This document shows, in pieces, positions 21,781 through 58,367 of a stretch of DNA of 64,000 nt. Within the stretch, counting starts at the first letter, position 1, and every line of letters begins with the position of its first letter. Source of the stretch: Octopus bimaculoides (taxonomy: Eukaryota); NCBI RefSeq assembly GCF_001194135.2, contig NC_068984.1, forward strand, positions 52,181,334-52,245,333. The letters run 5' to 3'. A model generated the notes under the pieces. It saw only the letters and a program-made list of their open reading frames with translations, had not been told where the DNA came from and did not search any database. The translations under genes and the position numbers were made by a program.

Positions 21781-21908
21781 TTAACAACTTAATGTCTTCA
21801 CAGCACGTTTCATACATTCTGAGTCACCAAACTTCACATCTCTTTTCTTAATTTTCACTCCATTTCTGCATGGACCAAATTCTCCCCATGGGCCAAAGAA
21901 GCAACGTT
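21781..21908 (-). CDS. PTN: PTN/MK-like exon 7: divergent 4-Cys terminal domain and stop
   Basis: tatttttcag|AA CGT TGC TTC...AGT TGT TAA. Encodes [42 protein letters not shown], spacing C-10-C-17-C-9-C, phase-compatible with exon 6. Confidence 0.85.
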
Positions 21909-24505
21909 CTGAAAAATACAAAATTCGTACAATATTAGTGCTTAATTAAAAACTCATTTTTATGTGCAAAAATTCTTCATTCACAAGAACTATTTTACAG
22001 AGATCACACCATGTTAAATAAGGTCTTTGAAAGACTGCAATCTAAGGAATGAGAAACTTTTGTAGAGCAAGAGGTGAATTGCTAACATAACTGAACTGAG
22101 AAAAATAGTATGTTTGCAATTATATGAACTGTTTTGATCATAATGCTTAAACAGGAGTTTTTTCTGTCTTCTCATTTTTTTTCCTTTTTTCATGACAGTT
22201 TTAGAGACTTCTCAAGTAAATGGTTTCAAAATTAAATGTGAGTGAAATTCGGCCTAAAGCAAGGAGTTTCCCATCCCATTCTGAAAATGTTAATAAGAAG
22301 AGCAATCACCAAAAAATGATAAACTGTTATAATAATGAATGCAGTTGAATGATTTGTCAACATTTCATACTTACAATGGTTATAATGCTATTTGAGTCTA
22401 CTATTAAATCATTTTGCTTCACAAACTACCTTTCAAAAGCACCTAAAAATCATTTCACAAAATTCTTTCCAAACTGTTCACTGTAACAGGATATCTCAAC
22501 ATAATCATAAATACATTTCATCCATTAAAAATTCTCAAAGAATAAAATATCTATCCTGCAATTATTATAACATACAATATGAAATAACCTTATGTTGTGC
22601 TTGTATCAACAATTTGTGAAGGTGCATGGTTTAATGGTTAGGGTATTTGGCTCCTGATCATAAGGTCATGAGTTCAATTCCTGGCAACATATTGCATCCT
22701 TGAGCAAGACACTTTATTTCATGTTACTCCAGTCCACTAAGATATCTATCTTCCATGTAAACTATTCCTATTGCTAAATTTTTAAGTAATTTGTTGATAT
22801 GGCACTGTCAGTAATGACAATAAGGGTTCCAGTTGATCTGAGCAGAACAGCCTGCTAGTGAAATTAACGTGCAAGTGGCTGAGCACTCCACAGACATGAG
22901 TACCCTTAACGTAGTTTGTATCCATGAGTATGACACTTTATTTCACATTGCTTCAGTTCACTCAGCTGGCAAAAATGAATAGCACCTGTATTTACAAGGG
23001 CCAGCCTTGTCACACTCTGTGTCACACTGAATCTCCCTGAGAGCTACACTAAGGGTATACGTATCTGTGGAGTGCTCAGCCACATGCACATTAATTTCAT
23101 GAGCAGGCTGTTCTATTGATTGGATCAATTGGAATCCTCATTGTAACCAACAGAGTGCCAATGTTTATGTTAGAAGAGCAACAGAATGTAGAGTATTTAT
23201 TCTATACAGCTGCATACAGCAGCTTCCAAGGTAAATCATTCATTCAGAATATTCACACATCACTAAATTAGAGGAAACATGCATACCAAGATACTCCACA
23301 TAATGCTAATCACTGCAAAATGAAAATAGGACCTGTTTTCAATGCAACAAACCAATTCAATACTGGATACAATGGTTTCACTCATAACTTCTGCGACAAA
23401 AATTAGCTCCTGATCATTTCAGCCATGTGTCACTTAATCAGTCATGATTAAGAAAATATTTCAAATAAAATAAGTGAAAAAGAATAAAATATATTTCTTC
23501 TCATATCAAGCCTAAAATAAACACTGCTGCTGCTGCTGTTGCTGCTACTACTACTACTACTACTGCTGCTGCTGCTACTAGTACTACTACTTCTTCTTCT
23601 TCTTCTTACCTTTTCCGCCTTTCTTGCTGCAAGACTTTGTCACTGTTTTAGTTGCTTCACACACTGAACCATCTCCACTCTCTAGTGTCATAGTCTTGGT
23701 ACGAATGTTGCTTGTTGTATTACAAGCACTCCAGTCACCATATGAATATTTGCAACCTAGAATTTCAGTGAAAAATCAAAATGAAAAAAAAATTACTTAT
23801 TACTGTTACATCACTTTAGCAGAGTTATTTCTATTTACATAGTTATGGCCAATTGGCACTAGAAACACTAGTTCCCTTCAGATCATCAACTTTTGGCACA
23901 TCAAATCAGACTAGCATATAAACGAAAGATGAAAAACTCCTTAGGGTATTAGGCAAGTATCATAATAACAAACCCATGTGCTTCAGTTTAGAACACAACT
24001 CAATTTCCATCTCCAGCCAGAGGCAAAAAAACATTCAGTCTACAAGAATGGGACTGGCATCAAAAATGAATCTACCCATAATATTATGTACTAAAAATGT
24101 TAAAATGTAATAAAATTTAACCTTCTGAATTGCAAAGAAGAAATATTTGAAAGATAGATTTTCATTTTCCTTTTCTGTTTTCTATGCACTATGCATATTA
24201 TAAGTAAGTATTTCCAGCAAGTTTTTTTTTTTATATAATATAATAATGATTTAGCATATTATAAATTATTGCCACAGACTTAATGGATCTTTTATCTTTT
24301 ATGTTTCAGTCATTAGACTGCGACCATGCTGGGGCACCATCTTGAAGAACTTTTAGTCAAATGAATTGATACCAGTACTTGTATTTTGTTAATCCTGGTA
24401 CTTATTCTATTGGTCGCTTTTCATCAAACTGATAAGTTATGGGGATATAAACAAACCAACACCAGTTGTCAAGCAATGGTGGAAGACAAACACCGACACA
24501 AAAAC

Positions 24506-24543
<38 letters not shown>

Positions 24544-27500
24544 AATATATGAGTATATGCATATATATGTACATGTATGTACATACCTTCATCTACATGT
24601 ACATATAGATACATATCTGGGTACATGACATTGCAAAAAAACAGACAAAATGATAAACAAGGTACAAAAAACAAGCAGGCCACATAGAGAACATATCCTT
24701 CATCAGCTGCCACCAGTAAAACACTGGTGTTTCGAAGAGTTAGGGCAGGACGCATCGTTAAAATGGATCTTCCCACGAACGCAAATTAAATTTTTTTTTC
24801 GTGGAGGATAGTGGCGGACAGAAAACAATGTATGTATTTATTTATGTATGTATCTTTACAACAGATTTCTTTCAGTTTCCGCCTACCAAATCCACTTACA
24901 AGACTTTGGTTGGCCCAAGTCTATAGTAAAAGACACTTGCCCAAAGTGTCACACAGTGGGACTGAACCCAGAACCATATGGTTGAGAAGCAAGCTTCTTG
25001 CCACATAGCCATAACTGTGCCTATTAAAATATCAGAAATGCAATTTTGTGTCAACTAAAATTGTGGTGGCATATATGTAATTCATTAAAAAGTTCAAAGT
25101 GAGATATAAAAGTAGACAAGAAAACCTTTATGTCCCTCAATGCTTGTAAAAGTGAACAGAAATGAAACATACCTTTGTTATTCACATTACCCTTGCACTG
25201 CTTAGTCTGTGGCTTGATGGCTGGACACGAGCTGTCATTTGGGGCCTTCAAAGTTAGTGTTCGGTGTTTAGTTTTTGTAGCTGGGTCACATTTTGACCAT
25301 GCTCCTTTGTTATATTTACAATCTACAAACAAGAGGAAAACAAACTAATAACAAAAGTTTTACTCATCAGAAGTAAAGTAGATAAACCAGAGAACGTTTA
25401 GTTTACTGCTCCTAAAACTGGGACAATTAATGCTATGAATACAATAACAATAATGATACCAAGAAGGACCTTCTATGAGTTAAACATTCTCACAATTATG
25501 AAATATTGCTATATACATATTTTAGTAATTAATATTTAAGTGAAGCACAAACAAAAACAAATAAATTTTTTTTTTTAATGAACAAGAGCTGATATATTTA
25601 TTGTTGTGGATGAAAAGAAAACAAGATAAGGCAATATTTCAGACAGTGATCCTTCATCAAAAAAGAAAAGATAGAAAAAAAATAAGGAAGGAAAAAAAAC
25701 CTGCTGTTGATATGAATCAACATTTTTTCTTTCCTGCCCCCGCCCCTTTTTTTTTTTTTTTTAGTTTTTCCTCTCTTGTCTTAACAAAGGATCATTGTCT
25801 GAAATCTGTGACTTATCCTTATTTCCTTTCATCCAGAGGATTAAATACCATGACTTTGTACTGTTGTTCTTATTGCTTCTCTTATCTTTTTTTTTTCTTT
25901 TTGGTTTATTCTTGTTTGTTTCTCATATGAATGACATGGCTGTGTAGTTAAGAAGTTTGCTACTCAACCACATGGTGCCATGTTCAATACCATAGCATGG
26001 CACCTTGAGCAAGTGTCTTCTACAATAATACAAGGTTGACCAAACCCTTGTTGAATGGAACTGGTAGATATATATTTGTGTCTCTTTGTCTTCACATTAT
26101 GTGCTAGTCATGAAAGGGTGTCACTGTCTTACAAACAGCGTTATTCATTTCTAATATTCTGTGAGAATATGTCTGGCCATGGGAAGATATTACCTCACTT
26201 GGAAACAAGTGAAGGTTGACAACAGGAAGGACATCAAACCATAGAAAATTTGCCCCAATAAACTCTGTCCAATCCATACAAGCATGGACAAGTGGACATT
26301 ATGCTGATGATAATTATGTTCAGTGATGAGAGTGGGCAGTACTCATCACATTTTTCAGTGGTTCAAAACTGTTGTGAGGAATGAAAACATCCTCAAACTA
26401 GAGGCCTGGCCTGAATGCTTGCAAAAATGTGAACTCTGTGAAAAACACCCAAAGTAGCAAGCAGTAGGTGATGAATTAGGTCCACTTTCCAGGTAGGTCG
26501 CAGCAAGATTAGAACTCAGAATGCTAAGAGCTAGAATAAATGCCATAAGGAGTCATCATGTTCAAGGAGCTGACAGTTCTGCTAGCTGACTGCACTAGCC
26601 TGGTACTTAAAGTATCTAACTTGGAAGGATGAAAGAAGGTAAAGTTAATCTTAGTAGCTTTTGAACTCAAATTACTAGAAGCATTTTGTCCAATACTCTC
26701 ATGATTCTCCCAGTTCACTGGCTGGATATCAGTTACTGCATCAGTGCAGTAATTGATATAATTTAGATATGAAATGTTGAAAGAACTTCATGAACTCTTA
26801 AACTTCAGTCATTTCCAACATGTTGAATTCTTTACAAAAGTATCTCATTTTCTAGAGTAAAACTGCTTTCAAATTTTGGCACAAGACCAGCAAGTTTGTG
26901 GGAGTGGGTAAGTCAATTACATCAATCCCAATGTTCAATTGGTACTTATTTTAATAACACTGAAAGAATCAAAGGTAAAGCCGACCTCAGTGAAATTTGA
27001 ACAAAGAACATACAGACGGATGAAATACTACTAAGCATTTCTCCCAGTATACTAACAATTCTGCCGTCTCACCACCCTTTACTATAGTAAAATTGCAATG
27101 CAACTTACATCAACTTTATCATCAGCATCATTTTATATATATTTTATATATATTTTGAACTCTTATAAAGAAAATGCTGTTATAAGGCCCTGGCTCTACA
27201 CCATCCAAACACAATTAGTTATAATAATAACATCTCTCCCAACTATATCAGAATATTGACTATTTACGCAAGGGTCAATTATAAGAATCAGTAACTCAAT
27301 CAGTGATATGCAGCAATCATATCAATATGAAATTAGAAATGCATGTAATGCTGGTAGTGGATTCCACCAAGAAGTTAAAGAGCTGCCAACAGAAGATTTA
27401 ACAATGGTAAAGAAGTAATATGCATTACAATATCCATTCCTCATTGTGTTGTGCTGGCTTATGTACCTCAATGACCCCAAAGGCTTTGTTAACTGAGTAC

Positions 27501-33500: not shown

Positions 33501-36067
33501 GTCTTGCAAAGAATGCCTTTGATCATAGGCCTACCTTGTCAAGGCAGATCTGGGATTAAACAACCACAACAACAGCAACAACAGCATGCTAGCAAAGAAA
33601 ATCAAATGCATGATGATGAAAACAATGATGAAGATGGTGATGATGATGATGATGATGGTGATGGTGATCATGACAATGACTACAACTAAGAATCTGAGTT
33701 GTTAGGAAAATATTGATGAAGACAAAATATTACATTGTTAGCTGAGATGAGTAATGGACTATTTCCAATGACGTTGAATGAAAAAAGTTATCTTCACTGA
33801 AAGATTAATCTATCAATAAAAATAACTATTATCAATAAATCCAAGAAATATCTTGATTTATTCCTTTAAAACCACTGACAAAAGGAAACAGATAAAGGAA
33901 ATTTCAGTTTGATCTAATAACTTAATTTGAACTATGATAAAACAGGTGTAAAAGCTTAAACAAAAAAAAAAAAGCTACAGCTAACACACTCACAAGCAGG
34001 AAAGACTGAGTAACAAATGCCATGCTTTTGCAAAATGTTTACGTGTTCATATAGCTGCATGCAGACAGGGTCACTCTCTGAGCTCTCTTGCCCTGGACCC
34101 AGTAGAACATCCAGTGTTTGATAGCTGGAGAGAAAGACAGAGAGAGAGAAAGCTACACCAGCATTGTGCTGGTACTTCTTTTCAATTAATCCTTGTAAAG
34201 ATGAAAGACAAGAGCACCTTGGCAGGATTTGAACTCAGGAGTGCAGAGAGTTAGAACAAATATCACAATACATTCCAACCAACCCTCTAATAACTCTGCC
34301 AGTCAACCACCTCATAGAAACAGGTGTAGGGTTTAGTAATTTACAAAAACTATAGCAATGCAAGGAAACTCAGGCATCAACAATAACAAGTGCTGATAAA
34401 TTCAAGAAAAATTTTTAAAAAAAAGTTAAATCATATTAACTCACTTCGGCGACAGGACTTGCTTATTGTCTTTTCCTTTTCACAGCTATTTGGATCCCCT
34501 CGACGTAAAGTTAGAGCACGGACCTTTTTATTAGTGACAGGGTCACAGGCAGACCACTCACCCTTCTCATATTTACACTCTAAAATCAGTAAGGATAATT
34601 AATTTCAACTGGAATAGGAATATTACAGAAATTTAATGTTCTGCTATAAGTTTTCAAATGCATACAAGTTAGATTAGAAAAAAATATATAATGGAACACC
34701 TCGTATAACAATGCACAATATCACTTTTTAGTTATATGCATTGGCTAATTATAGTCAGTGATCTGAGAAATTCTAAGATTATATCTGCTTTTGTTTCAAC
34801 ACAATATCAGAAATATTTAAGGAAATAATAGTATGCTGTATATTGCTATATCACTTCTAAAAAATATAAGTATAGAGATTTTTATTTGAAGTTCTAGTTT
34901 TTACAGATTACTTCATCAAAATGATTTATTTGTAAAAATATCAGCAGCAAGCTCGATTCATAGATTAATTTCTATTAAAACTGACAAAAAATTTTCAGTA
35001 ATTTTTTTTTCTCCCTTAGCTATGAAGTCAAGATTCATTATAAAGCTGTCAGAAAACAAATTGTTTATATTTTTAGAGTCAGCTTAAGCTAATGAATAAA
35101 ACAATTTTTTTACTTCATGAATAATAGTTTGGGATGTATAATTGTATGACTTAGCAGAACACAAATAACATATCTCCTTTTCTGCTGAGTATTTATCTTT
35201 ATTTCATCACTGAAATGATAATTTCTTTTAGCTATACTTACTGGGGCTTAATTTTATTTTATCTTATTTATTTATTTATTTATTTATTCATTACCTTAGA
35301 CTGAACACAGAACACTCTGGAACAGAGAACCAAAGGAAATACTATAAAGCTATTAAAGCTATTCTTTAACTACTAAACTCTTGCTCCAAATATTCTCCTT
35401 TACATCCTCATGAAAATAGAAATAAGGATAGTCTTTTTTAGTGTATAATGTATTAATGTTGCCTATTTTGTATGTTGGAACTGGGTAAATATCATGTAAT
35501 ATATTGTATACATGTTTAGTTAAAAGGGAACATCTAATGAAGATTATCCAAAAAAATTATATAGAATACTATCCCTTGTATGATGAATAGGAGGAGGATG
35601 AGATGCAGGAAGATAAAGATGGTGATGATGATGATGACAATGACGACGATGATGATGATGATGATATGTAACCCTCATTTTCAGAAACTGCCAACATATA
35701 TCTGACATAACTGATAAGAAGTAATTGGAGAAGGTAAGGCAAAAAGGTGTAAGTTGGAATGAATTAGGTTTGTAAAATGTTTAAAAGTATGTTTTGCATG
35801 GTCATATTCTCTATTTTATTAAATATGATCAATTTTTTTTTTTCGTGATTATTATATCAATGTATAAAACTATCATGGTTGGAGGGAGCAGTTGCTAATA
35901 TTCAGCTACAAAGCTGGAAATTTTTAGTAGGTATAACAGAAATAAATTAATAATAACTAATATCGTATAATAAATTAAGAACAGTAATGTAAATTACAGT
36001 TGTAGAAAATTTGACTGTTTTCATATTATATCAGTGTATATATATGCATATACATACATGCACATAT

Positions 36068-36102
<35 letters not shown>

Positions 36103-39100
36103 NNNNNNNNNNNNNNNNNNNNNNNNNNNNNNNNNNNNNNNNNNNNNNNNNNNNNNNNNNNNNNNNNNNNNNNNNNNNNNNNNNNNNNNNNNNNNNNNNN
36201 NNNNNNNNNNNNNNNNNNNNNNNNNNNNNNNNNNNNNNNNNNNNNNNNNNNNNNNNNNNNNNNNNNNNNNNNNNNNNNNNNNNNNNNNNNNNNNNNNNNN
36301 NNNNNNNNNNNNNNNNNNNNNNNNNNNNNNNNNNNNNNNNNNNNNNNNNNNNNNNNNNNNNNNNNNNNNNNNNNNNNNNNNNNNNNNNNNNNNNNNNNNN
36401 NNNNNNNNNNNATATATATATATATATATATACATATATATGAAATTGTATGTAAATATATATTTGGTCTAGAAGAGGCTGTACCAATGACTTTTCAAGA
36501 CCATCGTGCTATTTGAGGCCTTTCAAGACCATTGAGCTTGACAAAATTGATGTTTTATGTATAATGAGACAAAGCTAAATTCATTACTGAACACATCACT
36601 ACGTTACCTAAGTCTTTTTAGTTGAACAGTCTTGAGATACTCTAAATAGAAAGCATGCTAAAACATCAGGTATTTCTCACTGGTTCTCAGTTTACTCCTT
36701 ATCAAGGACAGAAAATATTTTAGAAGACTAAATTGTAAATTAAATAATATTTGACATTATAAGTACCTGTTTGACATAGAAAAGAGAAACAGATCCATTG
36801 GTAAGATTGTTTTACACACACACACAGACACACACACTCTCTCTCTCAAATAGGTCCTTAGATATGCCAGCTCTTAAAGTTGAAAAATTCTGGCAGATAA
36901 TTCATTTATAAAATATAGATAAGTTTATTTAGTTGACAAGCAATTAAACAAATGGTTTAAACATATTCAGTGGGTTAATTTTGATTGAATCTGTTCATCT
37001 CTCTACAAACTGACTCTGTAAAACAAAGGTTTGAAATGTTGCTAACTTACTTAATTTGCATGTTTTTGTTAATGTCTTCTCCTTTTGACATCTGTTTGGG
37101 TCTCCACGCCTTAGTTTTAACACCCTTGTTTTTTCATTTGTCTGGGCATCACATTGGGACCAAGGGCCTCGGGTATATTTACATGCTACAAACAAATTCT
37201 AAACATTATGGCCATATAAATAAAATATAAAGCATTCATTTAGAACTCCTCAAGCTTAAAAGCTGTAAATTATACAAGTGATTCTGTATAACCGAATATA
37301 AATATGAGTCTTCACAAACACACATCCACATGTGAAATGTATGGAAAACCCTATTGGTGTTGGATATTCAGCAGATAAAGTCAATATGTCTTGTTAATCT
37401 TAAAACACAAACTTTCTTTGTCATACACATAATTATATTTTCTTTCTAACAAGTTTTTATAATAAATGATCCACATTTAGGGGTTTTGTTTTTTTTTTTT
37501 TATTTTACATCTTTTCAAAAGGGGTACTTTACATATTAAAAAGTATAATGTATTATAAATAGAGCTCCAAAATAAAGTTCATGTATATTCTGACTGCATC
37601 ACAAACAAACTAACAGTAAAAGCTAAACAAAGATTTAAAAAAAGAATAAACTCTAAATTTGTGAGAAAGAGAAAAGAAACCAAACCAAAAACAAAAAAAT
37701 AAGAACAATTATACTAAACTTAGAAAGGAGTAATTGTGGTAGGTAAAAACCTAAACAGATTAAAATTTCACTGTTAATCTTGAAATGTATGAAATAAATC
37801 AATACTCTATGTTTATATTATCTTCCACATAGACATCACCAGCTCTTAGTACTGTACAGATTTCTTATATATTATTTATTCCGTTTATCTAAACATAGCA
37901 TACACTCAGTAAAATTATAATTCCCTTTGCCACACTCAGACATCATATAGAACAAAGTTATTTATAACATTCACTAAAACATTTGGAATTGTGTTTCACC
38001 ACAAACTGAATGGTAAGATTTCTCAGAAATAAACATTCCCTTTACATTGAAATTGTGGCCAATGAGAGGATGATGATTCAGTTTCAAACATATATCATTA
38101 ACCATCATAAGATAGTGCAACAATAAGTTCTCTTTAAAGGTTAAATGGAATGATATATTTTGTAATACTGACTTGTCTTTTTTTTACATTTTTATTGTCT
38201 TTTCAAATCCTTCATACGTTTACAATTTTTCTTTTACAAATTACTTGCTCACAGACTTTTATTGAATCAATATCAGTATCATTAATGTCCTTTTTTGCTA
38301 TCAATCTCCAAAGGGAGAAAATGTGATTTGCTTCAACACTCAGTGACCTTTGTGCAAGGAGTCAACTTGAAGGCCATGAGCCAGCAGCCTCTCCTGACAA
38401 ACGTTCAGCCAGATAAACATTAACAACACAGCTACACCCATTATACCTTTTGATCAATTCAAAAAGATTACAGTATTTCAGTCTAGTTTTGACTGTATGG
38501 ATTCCAAAACCACTAGAAAATATGCTTCCTTACAATAGTTTTGCTTATCATCCAGATATATCTCCAGGATATGGTATCCTCTACATTAGTTTTAGGAATA
38601 TAGCATACACTTGGTAAAATTATAATTTTTCAGATTCTTGACCTCATCTTTAGAGCTGAAACATTTCTTAATACTTACATCTTAAGCTACTTTATAATCA
38701 GTTTGATTTCTGATTGTCATCAGGTTTCTTACTCCTGGGTATATGCATAATACAGGACTAGATGCATCAGTAGCCAAGCAGATAAAACCATTACTACCCA
38801 TGCTTTAAAAATCAAGGTTTATTTGCACATTAATACAATGTACATATCCAGGAATAAGGCACCTAATGATGATTAGAGATCAAAACAATTAAAACCTGGT
38901 GTAGATGAAAATATGTAAAATAAGGTTTCATCTTTACAGATGATGTTGACAGTCTGAAAAATGACAATCTTATTAACAATAACTCAACTGAGGCATTAAA
39001 CATTTGATAGTATATACTAACATTTTATAATATAAGTTTTTTTTTCTATAAAATGAGACTCCTAATTCAATTATTATATGACTCAATACATTCTGTATTA

Positions 39101-40213: not shown

Positions 40214-40284
<71 letters not shown>

Positions 40285-43200
40285 CATACATACATATATA
40301 TTTGTACATTCACACCATACTCATGCACACACCCACACACTCACACACACATGCATGCAGGAGGAAGAAATGAGAAAACAGATGCAAATGGAGAAATATT
40401 TGCCAATGCTGTCATAAAGTGGGAATACAACAGAGCAAAACTACTTTTCTGATGATGCAAAGCAAAGTTTCTTGGGTTCTGACCAAATACTTTTGTAATT
40501 AAGTCACCATTTTTCTCACTGTATTTAAAGAAGAGGATGGTAATCTTTTATATATTTTTATGAATAAAGGATTTAAGAATGACTGCCGTTGTTGTCTTAG
40601 TAGATATATAAGTCCATTTGCAGTTACAATAATAGAGTACAACAAATGTACACAGCCATCATCTACAATGTACAATTACAAAAACATCTATGCAGACAAA
40701 ATTATAATAAAAAGAAGCAATATATAACTACAGTTGCAATATACAACAAGTGTATGCAACTAAAGTGAAGTTATTGCATGCAGCAACAGTTATGGAATTT
40801 TCTGTTATCACATTTTTTTAAAATTAATTTTTTTGCTGTAGATTTTACAGACTAGGCAGTGAATTTAAAAACTTACCCTTTCCTTGTTTACAACCCTTAG
40901 ATTTTATTCTAGTTGCAGGGCATTTCTTTGGATCACCTTTCTTCAACATCATTGTCATATTTTTGGTGCTGGTGTTGGGATCACAAGCAGACCAAGTCCC
41001 TTTCATATACTTACATTCTGTAACAAAGGAAAGAAATAGAAAAGTAACTCTTACACATTGGACAACATTATATATTGCAAGATATCAGAATTAGATGAAA
41101 AAATCTTAACAGAAAACATCAAAACATCACTTGTATTGTAACATTCTTTTCTACTCTAGGCACAAGGCCCAAAATATTGGGAGAGGAGGCCAGTCAATTA
41201 GATCGACCCCCAGTACACAATTGGTACTTGATTGATCGACCCTGAAAGGATGAAAGGCAAAGTCAACCTTGGTGGAATTTGAACTCAGAACATAAAGACA
41301 AAACGAAATGCTGCTAAGCGTTTCGCCTGGTGTGCTAACGTTTCTGCTAGCTCGCCGCCTTGTACTGTAACTTTAAAACTACAAAGCACTAAGGAATGCT
41401 TTATGTAGATGCTTGACCTACTAAAAGCAGTTGTCAAATTTTCCTTAAATTACACATCACTCTATTTGAAACGGATGCATTGCTTCTAAACATAAACTAT
41501 TATCTTAAAAGTAGAAAAGATGCATTGGACATTGTAGACATACAAAATAATAGGATGGTCATAGTAGGAGCACATTTCAGTTAGGGTTGACTCGGTTTGA
41601 ACAACAGGAAGCCTACTTTAAATATCAGACCAAAACAATTACTTCAACATAGGGGTACATATGATTGTGATAATATCTTTGCTCCTAATCAAAGAAAATT
41701 TAATAAATTCTTTGGATACACTACCTTATGTAATTCTGGAGGTCATTAAACTAAGAATCAATTATATCACATGATTACATCTTGTGACTACTTACTTTGT
41801 AGTTACAGAAGATAGCATCTATGCAACTGCTGGATCAGTTACAAATAGCAGCCAAACCACCCTCAAGTAATAGGCTGTTGTCTTAAAGAAAGAGAGAGGG
41901 TGAGAGGGAATGAGAGAGATAGAATTTTAGTCCTGGATAAACAAAATTAAAGAAGGGTCGGGATTAGAACAGTTTTGATCATAGTTCTGTCTGCTCAATC
42001 AAAACCAGCTTAGAGCTAAGTAACTACTTAGTTTACCACTATAAAATGTCAGTAACAATATCAATATATATGACACCTTTTCCCTTAAAAACATAGAGTT
42101 GATTCTGCTTAATTACTTCTGTAATTGAAAATCTCATGCTATCAACAGAATTTGCAAGATAGGTGATAAATTACAAGATTTCAGTGTGCTGTCAGTAGTA
42201 AAGTATTGTGATATTTCACACATATATTAAATACAGAAGAAAACAAAAATAAAATTTTATTTACAATACATTTTATGTAAACATAAATTACTTATCTTAC
42301 ACCCAGTTCATGCTGTTTCTTTGATATATTATTGGTATGACAATTGCTTTACTTATCCCCTATGAGGTTTTTTCAGTTGCTTTTGATATTTTTCAATTAC
42401 CCATTCTTAACTTGACAAAGGTTTTCACCCGATTTGAATTACTCAGTGATAACAACTTAGGTGATGCAGAAAAATTTACTGGGTCCATCACAGATTGAAG
42501 TAGTTGATAATGAAAACAAGATAACATCGTTTGACTAAAGAATATCTTTTGGCAATATTTATCTACAATGAAAACTTATCTATTGAAGAGTTTTATTATA
42601 CTATTAGAAATGAGATAAAATTCACTGAATGAGTAATGTGAACACATTTCATTTTTTAACATTAGTTACTTAGGTGTTGCCTTCTGTCATTCTAATTCAT
42701 CATCAAAACAGAAGCTTCTAGAATCACCTAATTCATCCTAAATCAAATATATGTTCAATTTTAGCATACATTGAGCTAAATGTTTACTCAAAATCTGAAA
42801 AAAAAAAAAAAAAAAAACTTGCGTAATTAACTGAGATTGGCATCATTAACTAATGTAAATGACATTGATTGATTAACTGAAAGTTAATTGTATAAAATAA
42901 ATTTCACATAGCTTCTATGTTAAACCAGTGTCTCTCATAATGATAGGCTGGGAAGAATGAAAAAAGAGATGGAGAAATTTTTGCATTTAGTAAAACTGAG
43001 ATGGTTTTAAACTTTTAAAACTTGTCCAATACTATAACAAAGAAGAAAGAAGTATATGGATGTAAGCTCTATTTTATCTTCTCGTTACTAAAGAGGGTGG
43101 AGCATAATGTTTCCACAATATTTTGGTTGGCTTTTATTCTGTTGTTCTGAGAACCATGGTTCTGAGAAATGGCTTGGTATTTTGAAAAAAAAAGCAATTA

Positions 43201-48419: not shown

Positions 48420-48481
<62 letters not shown>

Positions 48482-51400: not shown

Positions 51401-54400
51401 AACTCCAGCAGCATTTGAACTCAGAATATAAAGCTGGAAATAATTTCACTAAGCATTTTGTCCAGTGCGGTAACAATCCTGCCAGCTCGCCACCTATTGA
51501 GCACTAATATTACCAGATGGCTTAAGATGGTAAACTGGTAGAGAAAATGCTTAGTGGCATTTTTTCCAACTTTACATTCAGAGTTCAAATATTGCTGGGG
51601 TCAACTCTGCTTTTCTTCCTTTCAGAGTTGATAAAATAAGTACCAGTTGAACACTGGGGTCAATTTAATCAACTTACCTGCTTCAAAGAAATGGCTGGCC
51701 TTGTGATCAAGTTTGAGACCAATATTGCCAGGGGATTTGCATAAAGAATAAAAATTGAAAATATATTTCGAAAACAATACTTTTGTATATCATTTATTAT
51801 TTACAAGCATAAGTAGCATATATTCTATTTGTATTAATATCCACTTTTCCATGGTGGCATGGGTTGAACAAAATTCATTGAGACAGATTTTCTAACACTG
51901 GATGCTCTTCAGTTTTATTTATTTACTTATTCAAATTTCAAAGTTTGTTACTGTTAATATTGGTGACACACAAAAGACATCTGTGCTAGTGGCATGTAAA
52001 AGACATTCATGCCACTAACTCATAAAAGGTACCTGTGCCAGTAACGCATAAAAAGGCATCCATGCTGGTGACACATAAAAGGCACCCATGCCAGTGACAC
52101 TTTAGAAGTACCCATGTATACTCTATGGAGAAGTTAGTGTTAGGAAGGGCATCCAGCTGTAGAAACCAAGCCAAAACAGACTGGAGTGTGGTACAGCTCT
52201 CCAGCTTACTAGTTCCAGTCAAACTGTCTAACTCATGCTAGCATGATAAACAGATGCTAGATGATGATGATGATTGTCATTGTTATTGCAATTAAGGCTA
52301 ACTAAACAATTTAGCTTAATATTAGATTAAAACTTTTTTAAAGTTAATATTTAAATAATAGACAAAGACTAAAAAGCTGTACAGATGCAATTTATCACCC
52401 ACCCAACTGCCTTTTTTGTCCCCAGTACCCACATAGAAATTTTCATCCTTCCCAGAGTGTGATACTGCCAATTTTGAGAAGCACAGAACTATACCCTCAC
52501 AATACTATAAAATAGTATTGAGGCTAATGAACAAATCACCATTTACATGCAGCATGTAACTATATGAATCACTAATAGTTTGAAAAACATATTCTTTTTA
52601 AATATACTTCTAACACATATTAATGAAATATTGCTTTAATTAATGTAAATAAATTATGAATTCACTGCAAGTTTTATTGATTTCCCAGTTGAGCCTTAAT
52701 CTCTTGCACTGATCAATTAGTGCATCACAAATGTAAGTCTATGTTTTTACAATGTTACAGTTTCAATAAGTATAAATGAACGATTGTCTCCACAAATTTC
52801 TGAACATTGCTCATAAAACATGCCAGAGTTATTAGAGTATTTGTTAAGTTAACGTTATGTCGAGTCTCTTTCATAGGATTCTAAAATCCTACATACCTTT
52901 CGTTTTCTTACCTCCATAACACAACTATCTTCAAGACAAGATTGGTGGCATGGTTTCAACATCAATTAACTTTTTGGCAGTATCTTTTTCAATAGAGGTC
53001 ACTTTTATGCTGGATAAATAAGATGTTCCTTACTTTTCCAGTCTTTATATTTCATTTATCAAGCTACTTCTTACTTATTTGTTATTAGTTTCTAGTTTAT
53101 TTAGAATTATTCAACTGAATTACATTTTATTTTCATTTCTTGTTTGAATTATATACTTCTGGCAATATATCTCATTTGCTATACCACCTGCAGGGAAATC
53201 ATTACTTTAAAAACATTACGCTCTCTACTTTTATTCTCATCTATTACAATCTATTGTAACAGTCCTTTTTTCTAACAATATGCTCATTATCCTAGTTACT
53301 GCCTTTTTCCTAAAACCCTTTTAAGAAATCAATTCAAAGAAGGAGTCTCTAAATGGTTGCTCAAAATAACAGCCAATTTCCTTCAGATCATACATCCTAC
53401 AATCTTAAAAAAAAGGTAGGGCATATTCAACAATGTAGTACTGAATATCTAAGATCACAAGTGGAACGTTTTCAATCCTAGATCAATTTGGTTAGGAATA
53501 AGCTGGGCTAAACAACGACTTTTGACAAGTTCTATCCTTTAACACATGATATTCATTGTTATTTAATGCAGAGTGGCAGAAAGAATAGAACATCTTACTA
53601 AATCAAAGTATTTGTTTCTGCCTTAAGGGATGATAGGAATTTTGTTCAAATCCCTTTCCATTTTCTGAAGTTCAATAAAATAGAAACCTTGTCATGCTGG
53701 AACCTTCTATACAGTTCTCAAGCCACTAGAAATAGCAACACAATTTCATCAATTCAAACTCTACAATCTTAAAAACAAAGGACACATTTGCCAATGCTTC
53801 ATAGATACATACAAAAAGGATAAGTTGTTCAAAGCTGAAAGAACTTTGATCATAGAACTTGTCCATGGAAATGGAACTAGTAGGAAATGCTAAAAATTAA
53901 ATGCATAAACAATATAACATTTTGAATCACTTGCCTACAATGAAAAGAAAAAGTGATAAAAATAAAATTAAATAATTATGATATAATACAGTTCTATATT
54001 TAAGAGATGAGGAATTATATACATTATTTATATTATTTACAATTGACGGATATTTGTCCTCATCTTGTTTGTTGTTAACACAACATTTCGGCTGATATAC
54101 CCTCCAGCCTTTATCAAGTGTCTTAGGGAAATTTTGAACGTGGGTTCTTATTCCTAAGGTATTTTTTGATGCTGTTATTATTATATAAAAATATATACTA
54201 AAAATAAGATAAATATATATAGGGGGAAAAAAAAACCCGCACATATCGAGCAGAGGTCGGCAATGCCTGTGCTGAGTTTTAGGTCCAATGAGGCTTGCAC
54301 AACACCTCACAGACCCTCTCCACTTTATTGACATTATCCAGAAACAAGCCGGAGCAAGATGTCTGGTGCCAATATGAGTCGCAGGCTCAGGGATGTGGGG

Positions 54401-57400
54401 GCGCCGTGATCTCTAGCACAAACCAAAGATCCCCAAAATGTCCAATGCCATTCTCTGCATATTTGGTTTTATATCAGAGTGACCTTCTCCTAGAGACATG
54501 CTTCAACAAAAGCTGAGGGGCGCCTCACTCCCAGTGGTCTTTCAGCACACTGGACACCATCCCAAAATTTCTGCGTACCCGTGCTATTGCTAGACAGCCA
54601 TTGAGCCTGCACTAGGTCCATCCGAGCTTTCAACAGGTCTTGTTTTTAATCCTGCCGGGTTTTTAGCAACCCTCCTCACCAGGGTAGCCTGGTAGGGGTG
54701 CCAGTTTAGTCGCCAGCAACCCGACCATGCAACAGGTTGTACTGGATTACATGTTACCAGTAGCACTTATGAGAGCCTCATACGTGACCTGACATACATA
54801 CATACATACATACCAATGTATGATAAGGAATTTAGTGATAAGAACATTTGTGGGTGCCACCTTAGTGTATGACCTACTCGCCATATACATTTTAGCATGC
54901 AGTCTACCTCTACTACAAGAATTTTATACTACAGGATGATATAACAAGTTGAATATTATTAAATAACGATTAATTATTAATGACATACAGTTGATCATAT
55001 AAATCTTAATTAAAGTTTGAATCCTTTAATGTGACACACTTCGTACAGCATTTTGGAATGCTACAAACAAATCTACAGCATCTTTTCTCAGTACTTTCTA
55101 GCAACTGTGATCAATGTGTAACTAGAAAAGCTCACTACTGATACTTAGAGGGCTAAAATAGGTAAGCACAGGTAATAAATTCATAACATGAAAGGTCACA
55201 AAACCAGCTGAGATTTCAGTAGACACATCAGGTCATTTTACTGAGTTGACTACAGCTACTGTGGTAGATAATATGCGAAAGTAGCAACTGTTTATGTATT
55301 TCTGCTATGACAAATGTTATCAAATGTAAAAATAACATTTGTAGTTTCATATTTAATTTTACAACAAACTGCAGAAAGACTGACATAATAGCTATTTGCA
55401 AATATAAAGAAAGCATATATGAAAATGCAGATGTAACTGAGTGCAAGAAAAACATATGAAAAAATGATCTACTTCATTTGTCCTTTCTGATGAAAACGAA
55501 TCGAATGACAATCTTGTAAAGAAAGAAAGACACATATGAATCAGCTTACCTTTGCCTCCAGCTCGTTTTTTCTTGTTTTTGTTCATTTTATTATTCATCA
55601 TATCATTGCTTTCACAAGGTATTGTGCAAGCTAATGTTTTCTCTTTTTTACCACAATTACTTCCTGTTCTCCGGCCAATTTTTTTACCAGATCCACAGGC
55701 ACCCTCATTTGCTTTACATTCATCAAAAACCCATTTGGAACAATTTTTTCCTACAAAATAAAAGAAAGTATGCATTTTAAGTTAATTTTTTTTTCTATAA
55801 CTGGCCATTATGTTTCAGATATGAAAAAATAATTTTAGTTGAAGAAAATATACAATGCTAAATGCCCATACACTAAAATACAATATAACTTCCAAAAGTA
55901 ATGTAAAGTTAAAACATATTTCTATGCAGTGAAATGGAGACAATGCATATCTGAAGTGGAAAAATAGAAACATGATTTACTTATTTCTCTTGGTGAAGAA
56001 TCTTATTTGTATATTAGCAACAACTAAACCATTTTCCTTCAGTAAAGTGAAGACTGGAGATATTTAATGTAGTGGAGCAAGAAATTTTAGATAATTAAAA
56101 TTATTTAAAAACAGGATCACTAGGAAGTGTGTTAGAGTATTGTCAGTACAATGTAAACTGAGGGTATGCTTTGGTCTTGTTAGACCTCATTAGCAAAACA
56201 CAGTCTAACTGTTATTGCCAGATCTTAGATGACTAGAGATGTATGTAGAATTTTAGAGAATGAGCACTGATTAGCATGATGATTTAAAAGAATGACTGCT
56301 GGGTTGGGAATACCAAGGATGCTTAACAATTTACCTTTAGTCTATCTCCACTTCATTTCACAGATAAACATGTGAGAGTACCCAATAATAACAAATGCAA
56401 ATAAATTATTCACTTGAAATTTTGTTCCAACAGATTATACATATCTAAATTTCTAACTTAAATATAAACTACCTTCACGGTGGTGCTCCAGCATGGCCGC
56501 AGCCACTTGGCTGAAACCCATAAATAAAATAAAATAACTAGAAGCATTTATATTAAAATCACACTGTTAACAAAATAACAAATACCGAATGGAACTAGCT
56601 AACAGATAATAGAGGTTCTAAAATGCCTCATCACATAAAAATATTATTTCAAATTTTGACAAAAGGCCAATAATTTCAGGGGAGGAGATGGTGAGTTGAT
56701 TACACTGGCCCAATACTCAACTGGGCCCCAAAAGGATAAACGACGAAGTCAACCTAGGTGGAATTTCAACTCAGAATGTGAAGATAGAGGAAATGCTGCT
56801 GAGCTAACAATTCTGCCAGTTCACTGTCTTTGATTGCATAAAAATAAGGTTTAACAGAATTCTTTATATTCTGAAAAGAAACTGTTGTCTTCAACTGAAA
56901 TCATACAATACTTTATTGTGATTAGCCGACAACAGATTTAACTTCCAACATGAAAATCATCATCATCATATTGATGTCCACTTTTCCATGCTTGCATTAG
57001 TTGGATAAAATGTATTGTTGCAGATTTCCTATGGCCAGATGCCTTTCCTGTTGCCAAACCTCACTTATTTCCAGAGAAGGTAATATTTCCAAGGCTAGAC
57101 ATGATCTCATGGAATAGTGGAAGTCAAAGATATTGCTTCTATGACTGTGACAATCATTTAAAGTGATGCCAAAACAGAGAGAAACAAACGTCCATACACC
57201 CACACTCCAACACACACATAGATGTGTATTCTAAACACACACATACACACACACACATGTACATACAAAACAGTTTCTATCAGTCAAATCTACTTGCAAG
57301 TCTACTGTTGACCTGTGATTATAGTAGAAATCCAAGGTGCCACACATGCATAAACACACTACATAAAGGTAAAGTAAGTTATCTCCTTAAGTCACACCAG

Positions 57401-58224
57401 TTCATAAGGGCTGGTTTTCTGGTTTCATGGCATATATATTCCCTACCTAGATAGGATGCTGGTCTGTTGCAGGATTACTCATTTTTGCCAGCTGAGTAGA
57501 CTCGAACAATGTAAAATGAAGTGTTTTGCTCAAGAACACAATATGTTGCCTGGTCCAAGAATCGAAACTACAATCTTATGATCATGAGTCCAACACCCTA
57601 ACTACAAAGCCATGTGCCTCCACAAACACACTACATTCACAACACACACACACACACACGTTCACAAATTTGAATACCAATTACAGACATCAAGGCAACC
57701 TAAAACTCTATACCCATAAGCTAAAGAAAAAGAAATATCAGAAAATACTCTTTTGAAACAGAAGACTTGACTAACTAAATAATTTCTAAATAATTCTAAG
57801 TAATCATGACATGTATAACAAATTTTAAATATATTTTTCATAAGTAACATATATGACTAGCTAAATAAGCTCCAAGCAAAGAACTCTAAATCAACTTAAC
57901 TAGTACAATAAGCTTTAAGCCATTAACCTAAGTTGAATGATTAACATTCTTAGAATATCTTTTTTTATAAATTTCAAAATATCAAGCTTAGATCAAATCT
58001 GAAACATTAAAAAGGAAAAAAACACTAAAATTATATGCAACAGCAATTCACAAATGTTTCAATATATAACATGATTAATCAAAATATATTTTGTAGAATA
58101 TTTTCATGATAATCTGCTTACTTTTTAATGCAGCTGCTGGTTTGTCTACTTGTTGGGCTTTAGCTACATCTGTCATTCCAAAAGAGACAGACAGAATACA
58201 TGTAATAATCCACAGGAATTTCAT
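21781..58224 (-). CDS. PTN: Pleiotrophin/midkine-family secreted heparin-binding protein, multi-domain (SP + N-domain + 4 C-domains + divergent terminal domain); join of 7 exons, 334 aa
   Basis: Exons 58224-58122, 55750-55550, 41017-40877, 37185-37051, 25322-25173, 23756-23610 and 21908-21781 join via GT-AG phase-1 introns into one ORF of 1005 nt. Protein: [334 protein letters not shown]. The symbol is family-level (equally related to PTN and MDK, cf. Drosophila miple). Further small exons in the large introns cannot be excluded. Confidence 0.9.
22621..23160. mobile_element. Cluster of tRNA-head/CORE-like SINE pieces (family D) in opposite orientations
   Basis: Head 22621-22740(+) with ccttgagcaagacact; inverted 3' body at about 22795-22916(-); body at about 22920-23160(+). 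Same family at 57480-57620(-) and 60782-60905(+). Confidence 0.75.
23524..23607 (-). repeat. Compound trinucleotide microsatellite (AAG)6(TAG/CAG)n at the exon 6 donor
   Basis: Directly after G|GT on the minus strand: aag x6, tag tag tac tag tag, cag x4, tag x6, cag caa cag... Confidence 0.95.
23610..23756 (-). CDS. PTN: PTN/MK-like exon 6: C-domain repeat 4
   Basis: attctag|GT...AAAG|GTAAGA, 147 nt. [11 protein letters not shown]-20-C-9-C. Not in the ORF track. Confidence 0.93.
24295..24490 (+). repeat. Dispersed repeat family C (SINE-like), representative copy
   Basis: tttcagtcatt.gactgcg.ccatgctgg.gcacc...ttttagtc.aa...ttatggggat.taaaca.acc. Copies at about 950-1110(-), 6795-6960, 7275-7445, 8330-8453, 9495-9610(-). 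Confidence 0.8.
25173..25322 (-). CDS. PTN: PTN/MK-like exon 5: C-domain repeat 3
   Basis: gtttgtag|AT...AAAG|GTATGT, 150 nt. [12 protein letters not shown]...C-9-C. An alternative in-phase donor is possible at 25190. Confidence 0.92.
25935..26315 (+). mobile_element. tRNA-derived SINE family A, near full length
   Basis: Head catggctgtgtagttaagaagtttgct...gttcaatacc (A/B-box-like), accttgagcaagtgtctt core, tail aggaaggacatc...catggacaagtggac. Other copies: about 7474-7632(-), 8716-8848(-), 24862-25012(-), 832-870(+); tails at 52140-52270(+), 56960-57110(-). Confidence 0.8.
27430..27690 (+). mobile_element. RTE/BovB-like LINE 5'-UTR fragment
   Basis: Motifs gtacctcaatgacccc, caggtcaaa..tagaggccagacaaa and gctacagaaaca resemble RTE 5' UTRs as I recall them. 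Confidence 0.4.
28547..29072. mobile_element. hAT-type MITE
   Basis: TIRs CAGAGGTTGCCAAA / TTTGGCAACCTCTT; perfect 8-bp TSD GTATAGGT at 28539-28546 and 29073-29080. Confidence 0.88.
30184..30404 (-). mobile_element. Mariner-derived non-autonomous element
   Basis: TIRs ggggtgttgaaagattcctggctt / aagccaggaactttttagcacccc. The internal minus-strand [18 protein letters not shown] matches the mariner transposase C-terminus. Confidence 0.8.
36103..36411. other. Assembly gap within (TA)n, in PTN-like intron 4
   Basis: N run flanked by (TA)n. Confidence 1.
37051..37185 (-). CDS. PTN: PTN/MK-like exon 4: C-domain repeat 2
   Basis: gtttgtag|CA...TTAA|GTAAGT, 135 nt. [12 protein letters not shown]...KTR...C-9-C. 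Confidence 0.93.
40877..41017 (-). CDS. PTN: PTN/MK-like exon 3: C-domain repeat 1
   Basis: ttgttacag|AA...AAGG|GTAAGT, 141 nt. [11 protein letters not shown]-20-C-9-C pattern. Not in the ORF track. Confidence 0.93.
41145..41360 (+). repeat. Dispersed repeat family B (SINE-like), representative copy
   Basis: ggcacaaggcc...atcgaccccagtac...aaaggatgaaaggcaaagtcaacct...gaatttgaactcagaac. Copies at about 3745-3900(-), 5670-5880, 7885-8010, 8900-9115, 18685-18840(-), 26870-27080, 32230-32420, 39165-39380, 50630-50830(-), 51055-51260, 51280-51495, 51520-51725(-), 56640-56830, 63750-63850. Confidence 0.85.
51960..52110 (+). repeat. Degenerate minisatellite, unit about 27 bp
   Basis: About five units of gtgccagt.acacataaaaggcacccat, immediately upstream of a family-A tail. 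Confidence 0.6.
53960..54200 (-). mobile_element. Penelope-like terminal-repeat fragment carrying a decayed minimal hammerhead motif
   Basis: GACAC-TTGATAA-A-GGCTG-GAGGGTATAT-CAGCC-GAAA-TGTT-GTGTT at 54122-54077. Confidence 0.5.
54240..54794 (-). mobile_element. Retroelement 5'-UTR-like repeat (RTE-type), copy 2
   Basis: Homologous to 12140-12600. Contains ggagaaggtcactctgatataaaacc, resembling RTE 5'-UTR motifs, and several hairpins. Begins at (TATG)n. Confidence 0.5.
55550..55750 (-). CDS. PTN: PTN/MK-like exon 2: N-terminal domain (6 Cys) plus Lys-rich linker
   Basis: tttgtag|GA...AAAG|GTAAGC, 201 nt. Cys spacing C-7-C-6-C-13-C-8-C-3-C is identical to the human pleiotrophin N-domain, with conserved W, CG-G, R-G and IPC. 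Confidence 0.95.
58122..58224 (-). CDS. PTN: PTN/MK-like coding exon 1: signal peptide
   Basis: Acceptor tatttcag then CATC-ATG (exon starts 58228, so a non-coding exon lies further upstream). Encodes [23 protein letters not shown]|[11 protein letters not shown]: basic n-region, hydrophobic core, A-X-A cleavage motif. Ends A|GTAAGC, phase 1. Too short for the ORF track. Confidence 0.85.
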
Positions 58225-58367
58225 GATGCTGAAATATAAAGAAATAGATAAATTAATTAATCAGTTAATTTGAAAAAGAAACATCAACTTCATGAGTTTT
58301 GCTCCTCTACACCAGGAGATCTTCAATTAACTATAGATTTAGCATTTTCTTCTGAGCACTACAGGAT

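Follow-up and report, generated by a model that had tools for sequence, protein, structure and literature searches.

An octopus gene of the midkine/pleiotrophin family with tandem C-domain exons and a thrombospondin-repeat-like terminal domain

Work on midkine and pleiotrophin deals almost exclusively with the small vertebrate cytokines of two domains, whose receptor mechanism remains a matter of debate. What, then, is encoded by a locus of Octopus bimaculoides at which the C-type domain of these proteins recurs several times within one reading frame, and how does its product relate to the vertebrate and arthropod proteins? We analysed this locus, LOC106868732, within a 64,000-nt stretch of genomic DNA (the window), starting from an initial annotation that had been made from the sequence alone.

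Gene structure and family membership

LOC106868732 is a spliced gene on the minus strand running from an ATG at 58224 to the end of a TAA at 21781, exactly the limits that the initial annotation had assigned to one spliced gene. Instead of the seven exons counted there, we found eight coding exons, which in the full model form a 1140-nt in-frame CDS for a protein of 379 aa with 30 mature cysteines, in the order putative signal, PTN_MK_N, five PTN_MK_C and a terminal T domain (N-C-C-C-C-C-T). All exons are open, the splice sites are strong, each of the seven introns is GT-AG and of phase 1, and every structural domain has its own exon.

Coding exon 1 (58122..58224, on the minus strand like all that follow; 103 nt, ending in phase 1) carries the putative signal peptide and the start of the N-tail. 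Its product is identical to residues 1-34 of the RefSeq proteins P0001 and P0017, and the hydrophobic N-terminus, ending ...AKA|QQ, was judged a signal peptide by eye. The strong acceptor that lies 5 nt before the ATG suggests an extra non-coding exon further upstream. Exon 2 (55550..55750; 201 nt, phase 1-1) encodes the six-cysteine PTN_MK_N domain, recognised by Pfam and by alignment with human PTN, together with a Lys-rich hinge. The five PTN_MK_C domains follow, each on a phase 1-1 exon: C1 on exon 3 (40877..41017; 141 nt), C2 on exon 4 (37051..37185; 135 nt), C3 on exon 5 (34445..34579; 135 nt), C4 with a GNVNNK linker on exon 6 (25173..25322; 150 nt) and C5, the least basic, on exon 7 (23610..23756; 147 nt). 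Exon 6 also contains an alternative in-frame donor at 25191 that is used by no database isoform. Exon 8 (21781..21908, with the stop TAA at 21783-21781) encodes the four-cysteine, TSR-1-like T domain. The cysteines form a single domain of six, then C-9-C-20-C-9-C repeats in tandem and, in exon 8, the final C-10-C-17-C-9-C domain that had been proposed from the outset. No further copy of the C-domain exon was found elsewhere within the window.

Both Pfam families proposed for a check, PTN_MK_C (PF01091) and PTN_MK_N (PF05196), matched above cut-off. PTN_MK_C hit five stretches of the full protein at 172.8 bits (E 1.8e-51), far beyond chance, with C5 alone scoring 46.9 bits; PTN_MK_N, whose cut-off is 20.4 bits, scored 25.2 bits on the whole protein and 28.0 bits on the domain alone. 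The octopus N domain aligned with that of human PTN (8voh_B) at E 3.1e-7, N plus C1 was colinear with human PTN 2n6f (PTN residues 4-109; E 1.3e-12), and the C-domain profile aligned over its full length with 1mkc, 2n6f, 2lut and 2luu. The conserved Trp is present in all five C domains. Pfam and PTN structure alignments therefore confirm the assignment to the midkine/pleiotrophin family, with an N domain, tandem C domains and a divergent end domain. Judged by its sequence, LOC106868732 is a cephalopod member of the family's long-form branch, a provisional grouping that we define by two or more C domains in tandem ahead of a conserved T, with or without N, and into which the octopus protein falls.

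The octopus protein resembles vertebrate PTN and MDK (2n6f, 1mkc, 2lut, 2luu), which are secreted, in its highly basic composition and its predicted secretion. In both, a 6-Cys N domain precedes a 4-Cys C domain, and the latter agrees in cysteine spacing, Trp and basic heparin-binding residues. Whereas the vertebrate proteins have one C domain and then a Lys-rich tail, the octopus chain adds C domains 2 to 5 and the TSR-like T and, in its spliced form, ends at the last cysteine of T without such a tail; the N-C-C-C-C-C-T layout rules out a vertebrate-type protein of one N, one C and a Lys-rich C-tail. MK R89 sits in a one-residue insertion that is missing from invertebrate C domains. Drosophila Miple1 and Miple2, described with ‘repeated motifs’ (review PMC3267162), share with the octopus protein, itself predicted to be secreted, repeated PTN_MK_C-type domains in one secreted basic chain. 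D. busckii Miple2 consists of two PTN_MK_C domains (C-C) and a long pro-region that is acidic or of low complexity, and has neither N nor T, which makes the initial description of fly Miple as two-domain proteins of the vertebrate kind misleading. Chelicerate relatives are C-C-C, whereas the octopus has N, T and five C domains; an arthropod Miple-type protein, built of C repeats only, is ruled out by the presence of both N and T.

Isoforms and cassette exons

Omitting exon 4 or exon 5 from the model yields proteins letter-identical to RefSeq isoforms X2 (XP_014769616.1, without exon 4) and X3 (XP_052823018.1, without exon 5), each of which lacks one of the two C exons bordering an assembly gap. 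Because of this identity, the 334-aa protein with 26 mature cysteines that had been assembled initially, which equals the full model without exon 4 or exon 5, is a valid annotated isoform, but it is not the full complement of 379 aa and 30 cysteines: the gene holds five canonical C exons, and the four tandem C domains taken for its content represent one splice isoform.

The gap itself, 309 N at 36103..36411, is non-coding and falls within intron 4 (37050..34580), at distances of 640 nt to exon 4 and 1524 nt to exon 5. It is bordered on either side by one and the same (TA)n microsatellite, and no coding frame spans it. That the gap conceals an exon is improbable, since in the full-length O. vulgaris orthologue C3 comes immediately after C2, and the junction shows the Lys expected from the split codon A|AG.

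As all introns are of phase 1 and each domain occupies one exon, any C exon can be skipped in frame. Annotated isoforms (RefSeq/Gnomon predictions) of three Octopus species contain three, four or five C domains—exon 7, for instance, is skipped in O. vulgaris isoform P0002—and the range becomes two to five once a cDNA-like contig of another cephalopod is added. The residues at the isoform junctions (E, N, D, E, K) agree with the split-codon prediction. The cephalopod cDNA L004 has A|TC as its junction codon, made up of the last base of the hinge and the two bases with which the C3 exon opens in L001; this comparison is between two related species, and gene-level loss of C1 and C2 could also account for the junction there. 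Intron-less cDNA-like contigs of another cephalopod, from three independent runs, encode N-4C-T.

The exact 379-aa 5C protein of O. bimaculoides was absent from the protein collection searched. Its O. vulgaris counterpart (P0020) is likewise 379 aa long, colinear and 93% identical to our model, reaching 100% in C2 and 98% in C3, and the 5C form is supported by this model together with the intact, conserved exons. As every internal exon is symmetric (1-1), the C-domain exons behave as cassettes in the annotated isoforms, and alternative splicing would set valency and reach.

The terminal domain and the spread of the long form

Profile comparison and modelling identify T as a distinct conserved module that appears nearer to thrombospondin type-1 repeats (TSRs) than to PTN_MK_C. 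Its consensus, CFFGPW...C.NGV..K.R....GG..C.RKAVKT..C, is shared with other long-form invertebrate proteins, and seven alignment columns (C, W, C, R, G, C, C) are invariant across Mollusca, Priapulida and Hemichordata. The octopus T scored 76 bits on an HMM of T, and hhalign related T to C with 92.6% probability. Among 12 T orthologues, 9-10 matched the Pfam models TSP1_spondin or TSP_1 and only three matched PTN_MK_C; the TSP1_spondin matches, 10 of 12, had a best E of 2.1e-6 but stayed below the gathering score; the octopus T reached 14.1 bits on TSP_1, under the cut-off of 21.6. AlphaFold2 (AF2) modelled the 42-aa domain as three strands with a pLDDT of 93.8, and a Foldseek search returned canonical TSRs as top matches (probability up to 0.97, TM 0.6-0.68) at weak E-values of 0.6-1.5. 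TSR proteins—properdin, the semaphorin-5A TSRs, MIC2/TRAP and the TSR of complement C8/C9—are the best fold matches for both T and the whole chain and consist, as in the octopus, of three-stranded, disulfide-stapled, Trp-bearing modules. Canonical TSRs measure ~55 aa with six cysteines and a WxxW layer, whereas the octopus modules measure ~42 aa with four cysteines, T included. Many TSR modules bind sulfated glycans.

Repeat number across lophotrochozoans and beyond, which the initial annotation had wished to see charted, ranged from one to ten C domains over 340 family clusters among 1.84 billion proteins, several loci having multiple predicted isoforms; 35 of the top 150 clusters carry T. 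The N-nC-T layout occurs in a brachiopod (Lingula), a priapulid (Priapulus), hemichordates (Saccoglossus, Glandiceps) and echinoderms (Asterias, Amphiura), with two N domains in Glandiceps and three in Amphiura. Lingula LOC106165955, Saccoglossus ‘Pleiotrophin-like 150’, Asterias LOC117305338, Priapulus LOC106820788 and Gigantopelta LOC121370308 share with the octopus the N-nC-T or nC-T order and T itself. Other molluscs have 5-10 C domains plus T, the bivalve and gastropod forms examined here being without an N domain, and in one relative (P0041) three C domains are joined to four of the fn3 type. The brachiopod, priapulid, hemichordate and echinoderm occurrences rule out N-nC-T as an octopus novelty, a possibility that had been raised at the start: the layout is routine across invertebrate phyla and already stands in RefSeq and UniProt as ‘uncharacterized’, although our literature search found no publication that characterises it. 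With a layout so common and already predicted in databases, the octopus gene is uncharacterised rather than unusual.

Being common to brachiopods, priapulids, hemichordates and echinoderms, N-nC-T is probably the ancestral bilaterian form, and the vertebrate N-C and arthropod C-C(-C) proteins may be reduced versions of it. A fuller scenario, to which we give slightly less than even odds, would have the ancestral protein end in a TSR-like T cap (a module unnamed and without its own Pfam model) that was lost independently in vertebrates and arthropods, with the phase-1 cassettes of cephalopods, and probably also those of brachiopods and echinoderms, being alternatively spliced to tune the number and valency of glycosaminoglycan (GAG)-binding C domains in one secreted ligand.

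Charge, structure and likely function

The mature protein (about 355 aa) has a pI of ~9.8, with 86 K+R against 31 D+E, in keeping with the strongly basic character first ascribed to it. In midkine, the heparin sites are W69/K79/R81/K86/K87/K102, of which K79/R81/K102 and K86/K87 form the two clusters of the C domain (PMC3267162). All five basic positions are K or R in C2 and C3; four of five are kept in C4 and in C1, where the R81 equivalent is M, and three of five in C5, which has lost the basic pair of cluster 2. Given these losses in C1 and C5, not all C domains need bind GAGs. The structure prediction that had been suggested, run with AF2 on the full-length protein, gave confident domains and non-confident linkers (pTM 0.26), with properdin, PTN and midkines as top fold matches.

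The best explanation, with a probability of roughly 0.6, is a secreted long-form midkine/pleiotrophin protein with cassette C exons that serves as a multivalent GAG ligand. The mature protein would resemble beads on a string: small three-stranded beta modules follow one another, and the majority bear midkine's basic heparin-binding residues. Since most modules keep these residues, multivalent binding of sulfated GAG chains—on heparan/chondroitin sulfate proteoglycans and in the extracellular matrix—by a single polypeptide would be the most likely activity, and is plausible from the sequence; the conserved T cap may provide a separate TSR-type binding surface.

Alternatively, the protein might be mainly an extracellular-matrix organiser or pattern-recognition scaffold, in the manner of properdin and the spondins, rather than a receptor-clustering, growth-factor-like ligand. 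Properdin, a tandem TSR chain, is indeed the structure that best matches the full-length model (1w0r_A, E 1.1e-5), and the affinity of T to canonical TSRs, the N-less bivalve and gastropod orthologues and the fn3 fusion of P0041 point in the same direction. However, N plus C1 is colinear with the whole PTN core, midkine's heparin-site residues are conserved, and the match to properdin has very low global TM-scores (0.13), since the model does not predict how the domains are placed relative to one another. In midkine and pleiotrophin, moreover, binding to matrix does not preclude signalling, and we regard a predominantly scaffolding role as unlikely.

Less probable still is a chiefly cationic antimicrobial or innate-immune effector whose tandem basic domains bind and disrupt microbial surfaces. 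The octopus protein's strongly basic character would suit such a role, midkine, pleiotrophin and relatives are bactericidal according to Svensson et al. 2010, as cited in PMC4224452, and transcriptome lists for infection and integument include insect ‘pleiotrophin-like’ genes. Yet the Tribolium gene is repressed (0.17-fold) rather than induced after septic injury, and over >500 My the disulfide framework, Trp and heparin triad have been precisely conserved, which speaks for a specific ligand-binding fold and not for charge alone. That the multi-domain protein arose from faulty annotation or assembly, out of separate small genes, pseudo-exons or a false join over the N run, might be suspected from the gap, the purely computational isoform models and the missing exact 379-aa entry, but is very improbable given the gap's intronic, (TA)n-flanked position, the open phase-1 exons with strong splice sites, the colinear models from three Octopus species, the intron-less N-4C-T contigs and the same architecture in five phyla.

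Should N-nC-T prove ancestral, the vertebrate proteins would be trimmed versions of a multivalent GAG-binding chain, and T a functional module that they have lost. With its 3C, 4C and 5C isoforms, a one-domain-per-exon, all-phase-1 gene would offer a natural system for relating valency to proteoglycan binding and clustering. For routine annotation of the octopus genome, an ‘uncharacterized protein’ can now be named as a member of the midkine/pleiotrophin family.

An eight-exon midkine/pleiotrophin gene

A motif scan of all six reading frames of the window revealed six consecutive cysteine-framework units on the minus strand: five with C-9-C-20-C-9-C spacing (C1, 41015-40890; C2, 37183-37058; C3, 34577-34452; C4, 25320-25195; C5, 23754-23629) and a terminal unit, T, with C-10-C-17-C-9-C spacing (21903-21784). 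Upstream on the same strand lie a 6-Cys unit (N, about 55750-55550) and a hydrophobic leader starting with an ATG at 58224. Each unit forms a short open segment, with a pyrimidine-rich (T/C)AG acceptor on one side and a GT(A/G)AGT-type donor on the other. Joining the eight exons (E1-E8) yielded a 1140-nt in-frame CDS that encodes 379 aa, including 31 Cys (30 without the leader), 88 Lys plus Arg and 32 Asp plus Glu residues; all seven introns are in phase 1. Pfam recognized PTN_MK_C in five stretches of the protein (172.8 bits, E = 1.8e-51) and PTN_MK_N at 25.2 bits (cut-off 20.4), upholding the assignment to the midkine/pleiotrophin (MK/PTN) family made in the initial annotation. Cys units, splice sites, reading frame and Pfam matches together confirm the gene at 58224-21781 (LOC106868732): it is real, and the rival view that the model is an artefact is nearly excluded. 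No extra domain copies were found in the 64 kb by tblastn with every domain as query.

The initial annotation had counted four C domains, one too few. Its 334-aa protein does exist as an annotated RefSeq isoform, lacking one C exon relative to the full model: omission of exon 4 or exon 5 leaves 334 aa with 27 Cys, and these assemblies are letter-identical to XP_014769616.1 (isoform X2) and XP_052823018.1 (isoform X3), respectively, of LOC106868732, which identifies the DNA as that of Octopus bimaculoides. The exact 379-aa model has no identical entry in the protein collection, nor has a 373-aa variant with a shorter exon 6 (donor 25191), which we rejected because the GNVNNK linker is present in every database isoform.

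At the 5' end, the ATG follows a strong polypyrimidine-CAG acceptor (58225-58245, minus strand) at a distance of 5 nt, which suggests a non-coding exon further upstream. The full-length Octopus vulgaris orthologue carries a 23-aa N-terminal extension without in-frame support in the O. bimaculoides sequence. Towards the 3' end, leaving the exon 7 donor unused would add seven open codons before a stop (23570-23625, minus strand), and the readthrough protein would end past C5 in a Lys-rich tail resembling those of vertebrate midkine and pleiotrophin. At the start of intron 7 itself stands (AAG)5, and after it comes a triplet array of TAG/TAC/CAG (TRF, 23533-23591).

An N run (36103-36411) interrupts intron 4 (37050..34580; 2471 nt as assembled), leaving 640 nt to exon 4 and 1524 nt to exon 5. 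Since the internal exons are all of phase 1-1, an exon hidden there would leave the frame intact. On each side the gap borders on an identical (TA)n microsatellite, which is what usually causes assembly gaps of this kind, and no reading frames cross it. In the O. vulgaris orthologue, C2 is joined straight to C3 via a Lys, the residue expected if the codon A|AG spans the junction; counted from the Met common to both species, the protein has exactly 379 aa, with 93% identity to the O. bimaculoides model. This comparison makes a hidden exon unlikely, and the gap is harmless for the gene model.

Three N runs interrupt the window, whose sequence is AT-rich overall (34% GC). Outside the gene it holds microsatellites, two more gaps (599-791, 193 N; 17958-18499, 542 N), which several mechanically listed ORFs cross, and ORFs without Pfam or Rfam match: Pfam returned nothing for the flanking ORFs at 17262-17785, 58829-59242 and 60916-61800, and Rfam nothing across the window. 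The second of these (minus strand) is a Cys-rich ORF of 137 aa, separated from the 5' end of the gene by about 600 nt and with no Pfam match at E ≤ 0.1; given a stretch that looks GIY-YIG-like by eye ('IIYCTSC...CIGQTGRRLADRF'), it may be a transposon remnant.

Cassette C exons and isoforms

Because each junction codon is split 1|2, the residue encoded there is set by which exons join. The predicted residues (Glu for E3>E5, Asn for E4>E6, Asp for E3>E6, Glu for E6>E8 and Lys for E4>E5) were all present in the matching isoforms of O. sinensis (X2, X3, X4) and O. vulgaris, which indicates that isoforms differ in C-domain number, with three, four or five copies.

Independent evidence of a transcript-like kind comes from another cephalopod, in which intron-less contigs of ~1.2 kb from three sequencing runs encode N-4C-T (P0005), and a contig from a related species encodes N-2C-T (P0008). 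The junction codon of the latter, A|TC (Ile), equals the last base of the hinge exon plus the first two of the C3 exon (A|AA and G|TC, respectively, in the cDNA-like contig L001), and we read it, in a comparison across two species, as the signature of C1 and C2 skipping. In four cDNA-like contigs from other cephalopods (L001-L004), C4 is joined directly to T without an equivalent of C5, which may be octopod-specific or skipped in the underlying samples.

Between O. bimaculoides and O. vulgaris, no part of the protein is better conserved than the two skippable domains C2 (100% identical) and C3 (98%), which indicates that each has a function when it is included. The duplications that gave rise to the C exons are old. 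A recent origin was rejected, as the C domains are 40-64% identical among themselves at the protein level, the intron sequences around the C exons show no similarity, and the other cephalopod has orthologues of C1-C4 in matching positions.

The terminal domain and the spread of the architecture

The 'divergent terminal domain' of the initial annotation proved to be a module in its own right rather than a C domain in decay. Homologues from gastropods, bivalves, one priapulid and one hemichordate end in this 40-residue module as well, with seven invariant alignment columns (C, W, C, R, G, C, C) and the consensus C.NGV..K.R.V..GG.EC.RRAVKTK.C in its later part. Profile-profile comparison recovered homology to C domains across the last 35 T columns (probability 92.6%, E = 4.6e-7). 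Pfam searches with 12 T members returned TSP1_spondin (10/12), TSP_1 (9/12) and PTN_MK_C (3/12), all below gathering scores, and the sole match of octopus T alone was TSP_1 (14.1 bits). AlphaFold2 predicted three strands and a short helix (pLDDT 93.8), for which the top Foldseek matches were canonical thrombospondin type-1 repeats (TSRs) of MIC2, complement C8/C9, semaphorin-5A, TRAP and Unc5D (TM 0.6-0.68, probability up to 0.97; E-values weak, the query being small); midkine/PTN domains ranked below them (TM about 0.45). A merely degenerate C domain was rejected as a full description, T being more conserved across phyla than C and nearer to TSRs. We regard T as a separate cap domain, TSR-like and not covered by any dedicated Pfam model.

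When isoform X2 (334 aa) was run with phmmer against all 1.84 billion representative proteins, 340 clusters in total reached E ≤ 1e-3, marking the family as small. Local N, C and T HMMs, applied to the best 150 of these 340, counted one to ten C domains per protein and T in 35 proteins. Among these 150, the combinations included N-4C-T (n = 5), N-3C-T (n = 3), N-2C-T (n = 4), N-C-T (n = 2), 5C-T (n = 5) and 7C-T (n = 3), as well as 3N-3C-T, 9C-T, 10C-T and, in 17 vertebrate-like sequences, N-C. A word-indexed protein search with the T profile or a broad C profile gave three fragments each and added nothing.

N-4C-T is found in Lingula anatina (isoform X4) and Priapulus caudatus, N-3C-T in Saccoglossus ('Pleiotrophin-like 150') and Asterias, and N-3C in Lytechinus. 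Further examples are 10C-T in Gigantopelta, 9C-T in Potamilus, 8-9C-T in Mercenaria, 7C-T in Mya, 6C-T in Haliotis, 5C-T in Solemya, 6C in Pomacea and 7C in the annelid Paralvinella; Tachypleus and Stegodyphus have 3C, and Trichoplusia and Drosophila, including D. busckii Miple2, have 2C without N. The N domain is present in two copies in the hemichordate Glandiceps (2N-3C-T), in three in the brittle star Amphiura (3N-3C-T) and in none in bivalve and gastropod long forms (P0006, P0007, P0024), implying that both ends of the architecture are evolutionarily plastic. T, by contrast, stays single and terminal. The occurrence of N-nC-T across Lophotrochozoa, Ecdysozoa and Ambulacraria is most simply read as ancestral.

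Unusual fusions of PTN_MK_C-type repeats also occur among the phmmer hits: P0041 (626 aa) has three C and four fibronectin type III domains, and in P0113 and P0127, both low-complexity, AT-rich-looking and taken from sequencing-run assemblies, C/TSP1_spondin-like repeats are fused to a jacalin lectin or beta/gamma-crystallin domain.

The octopus gene is thus an ordinary member of a widespread architecture, already in databases as 'uncharacterized'. The initial annotation had allowed that this architecture might be both routine across molluscs and already characterized; the former holds, but for the latter a full-text literature search found no paper on a mollusc, cephalopod or long-form invertebrate MK/PTN. 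Mentions were limited to passing 'pleiotrophin-like' rows in transcriptome tables of insects and to one sea-urchin paper with a list of Pfam domains.

Heparin-site residues and possible function

N and C1 are colinear with nearly the whole human pleiotrophin core (2n6f residues 4-109, E = 1.3e-12). When 52 invertebrate C domains were combined in a profile, it aligned end to end with the C domain of human midkine (1mkc), with PTN and with zebrafish midkines, so midkine numbering can be transferred to the octopus C domains. Reported heparin-binding residues are K79, R81 and K102 (cluster 1), K86, K87 and R89 (cluster 2) and W69 (Muramatsu review, PMC3267162); R89 falls in an insertion of one residue that is particular to the vertebrate domain. 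At W69, K79, R81, K86, K87 and K102, in this order, C2 and C3 carry W, K, R, R, R, K; C4 carries W, K, R, K, A, K; C1 carries W, K, M, K, K, K; and C5 carries W, R, K, E, S, K.

Short linkers of 3-8 residues separate neighbouring C domains, and a Lys-rich stretch of 21 residues separates N from C1. An AlphaFold2 model of isoform X2 (10-sequence alignment) showed confident three-stranded modules, whereas confidence was low for the leader, hinge and C4-C5 linker; a pTM of 0.26 fixes no mutual arrangement of the domains, which is consistent with beads on a string. Best fold matches of this model were properdin (tandem TSRs, E = 1.1e-5), pleiotrophin and midkines. The mature chain is strongly net positive, with a pI of about 9.8. 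A matrix-organising, properdin-like role is a less likely alternative to multivalent glycosaminoglycan binding, and a cationic antimicrobial role is another. No evidence emerged on the part in neural development or arm regeneration that the initial annotation had suggested.

Family, domain order and gene structure, along with the conservation pattern at heparin sites and the strong positive charge, are observed features of the octopus protein. The protein is probably secreted, and several of its C domains probably bind sulfated glycosaminoglycans simultaneously; splicing would alter the number of binding modules, and T may add a separate TSR-type surface.
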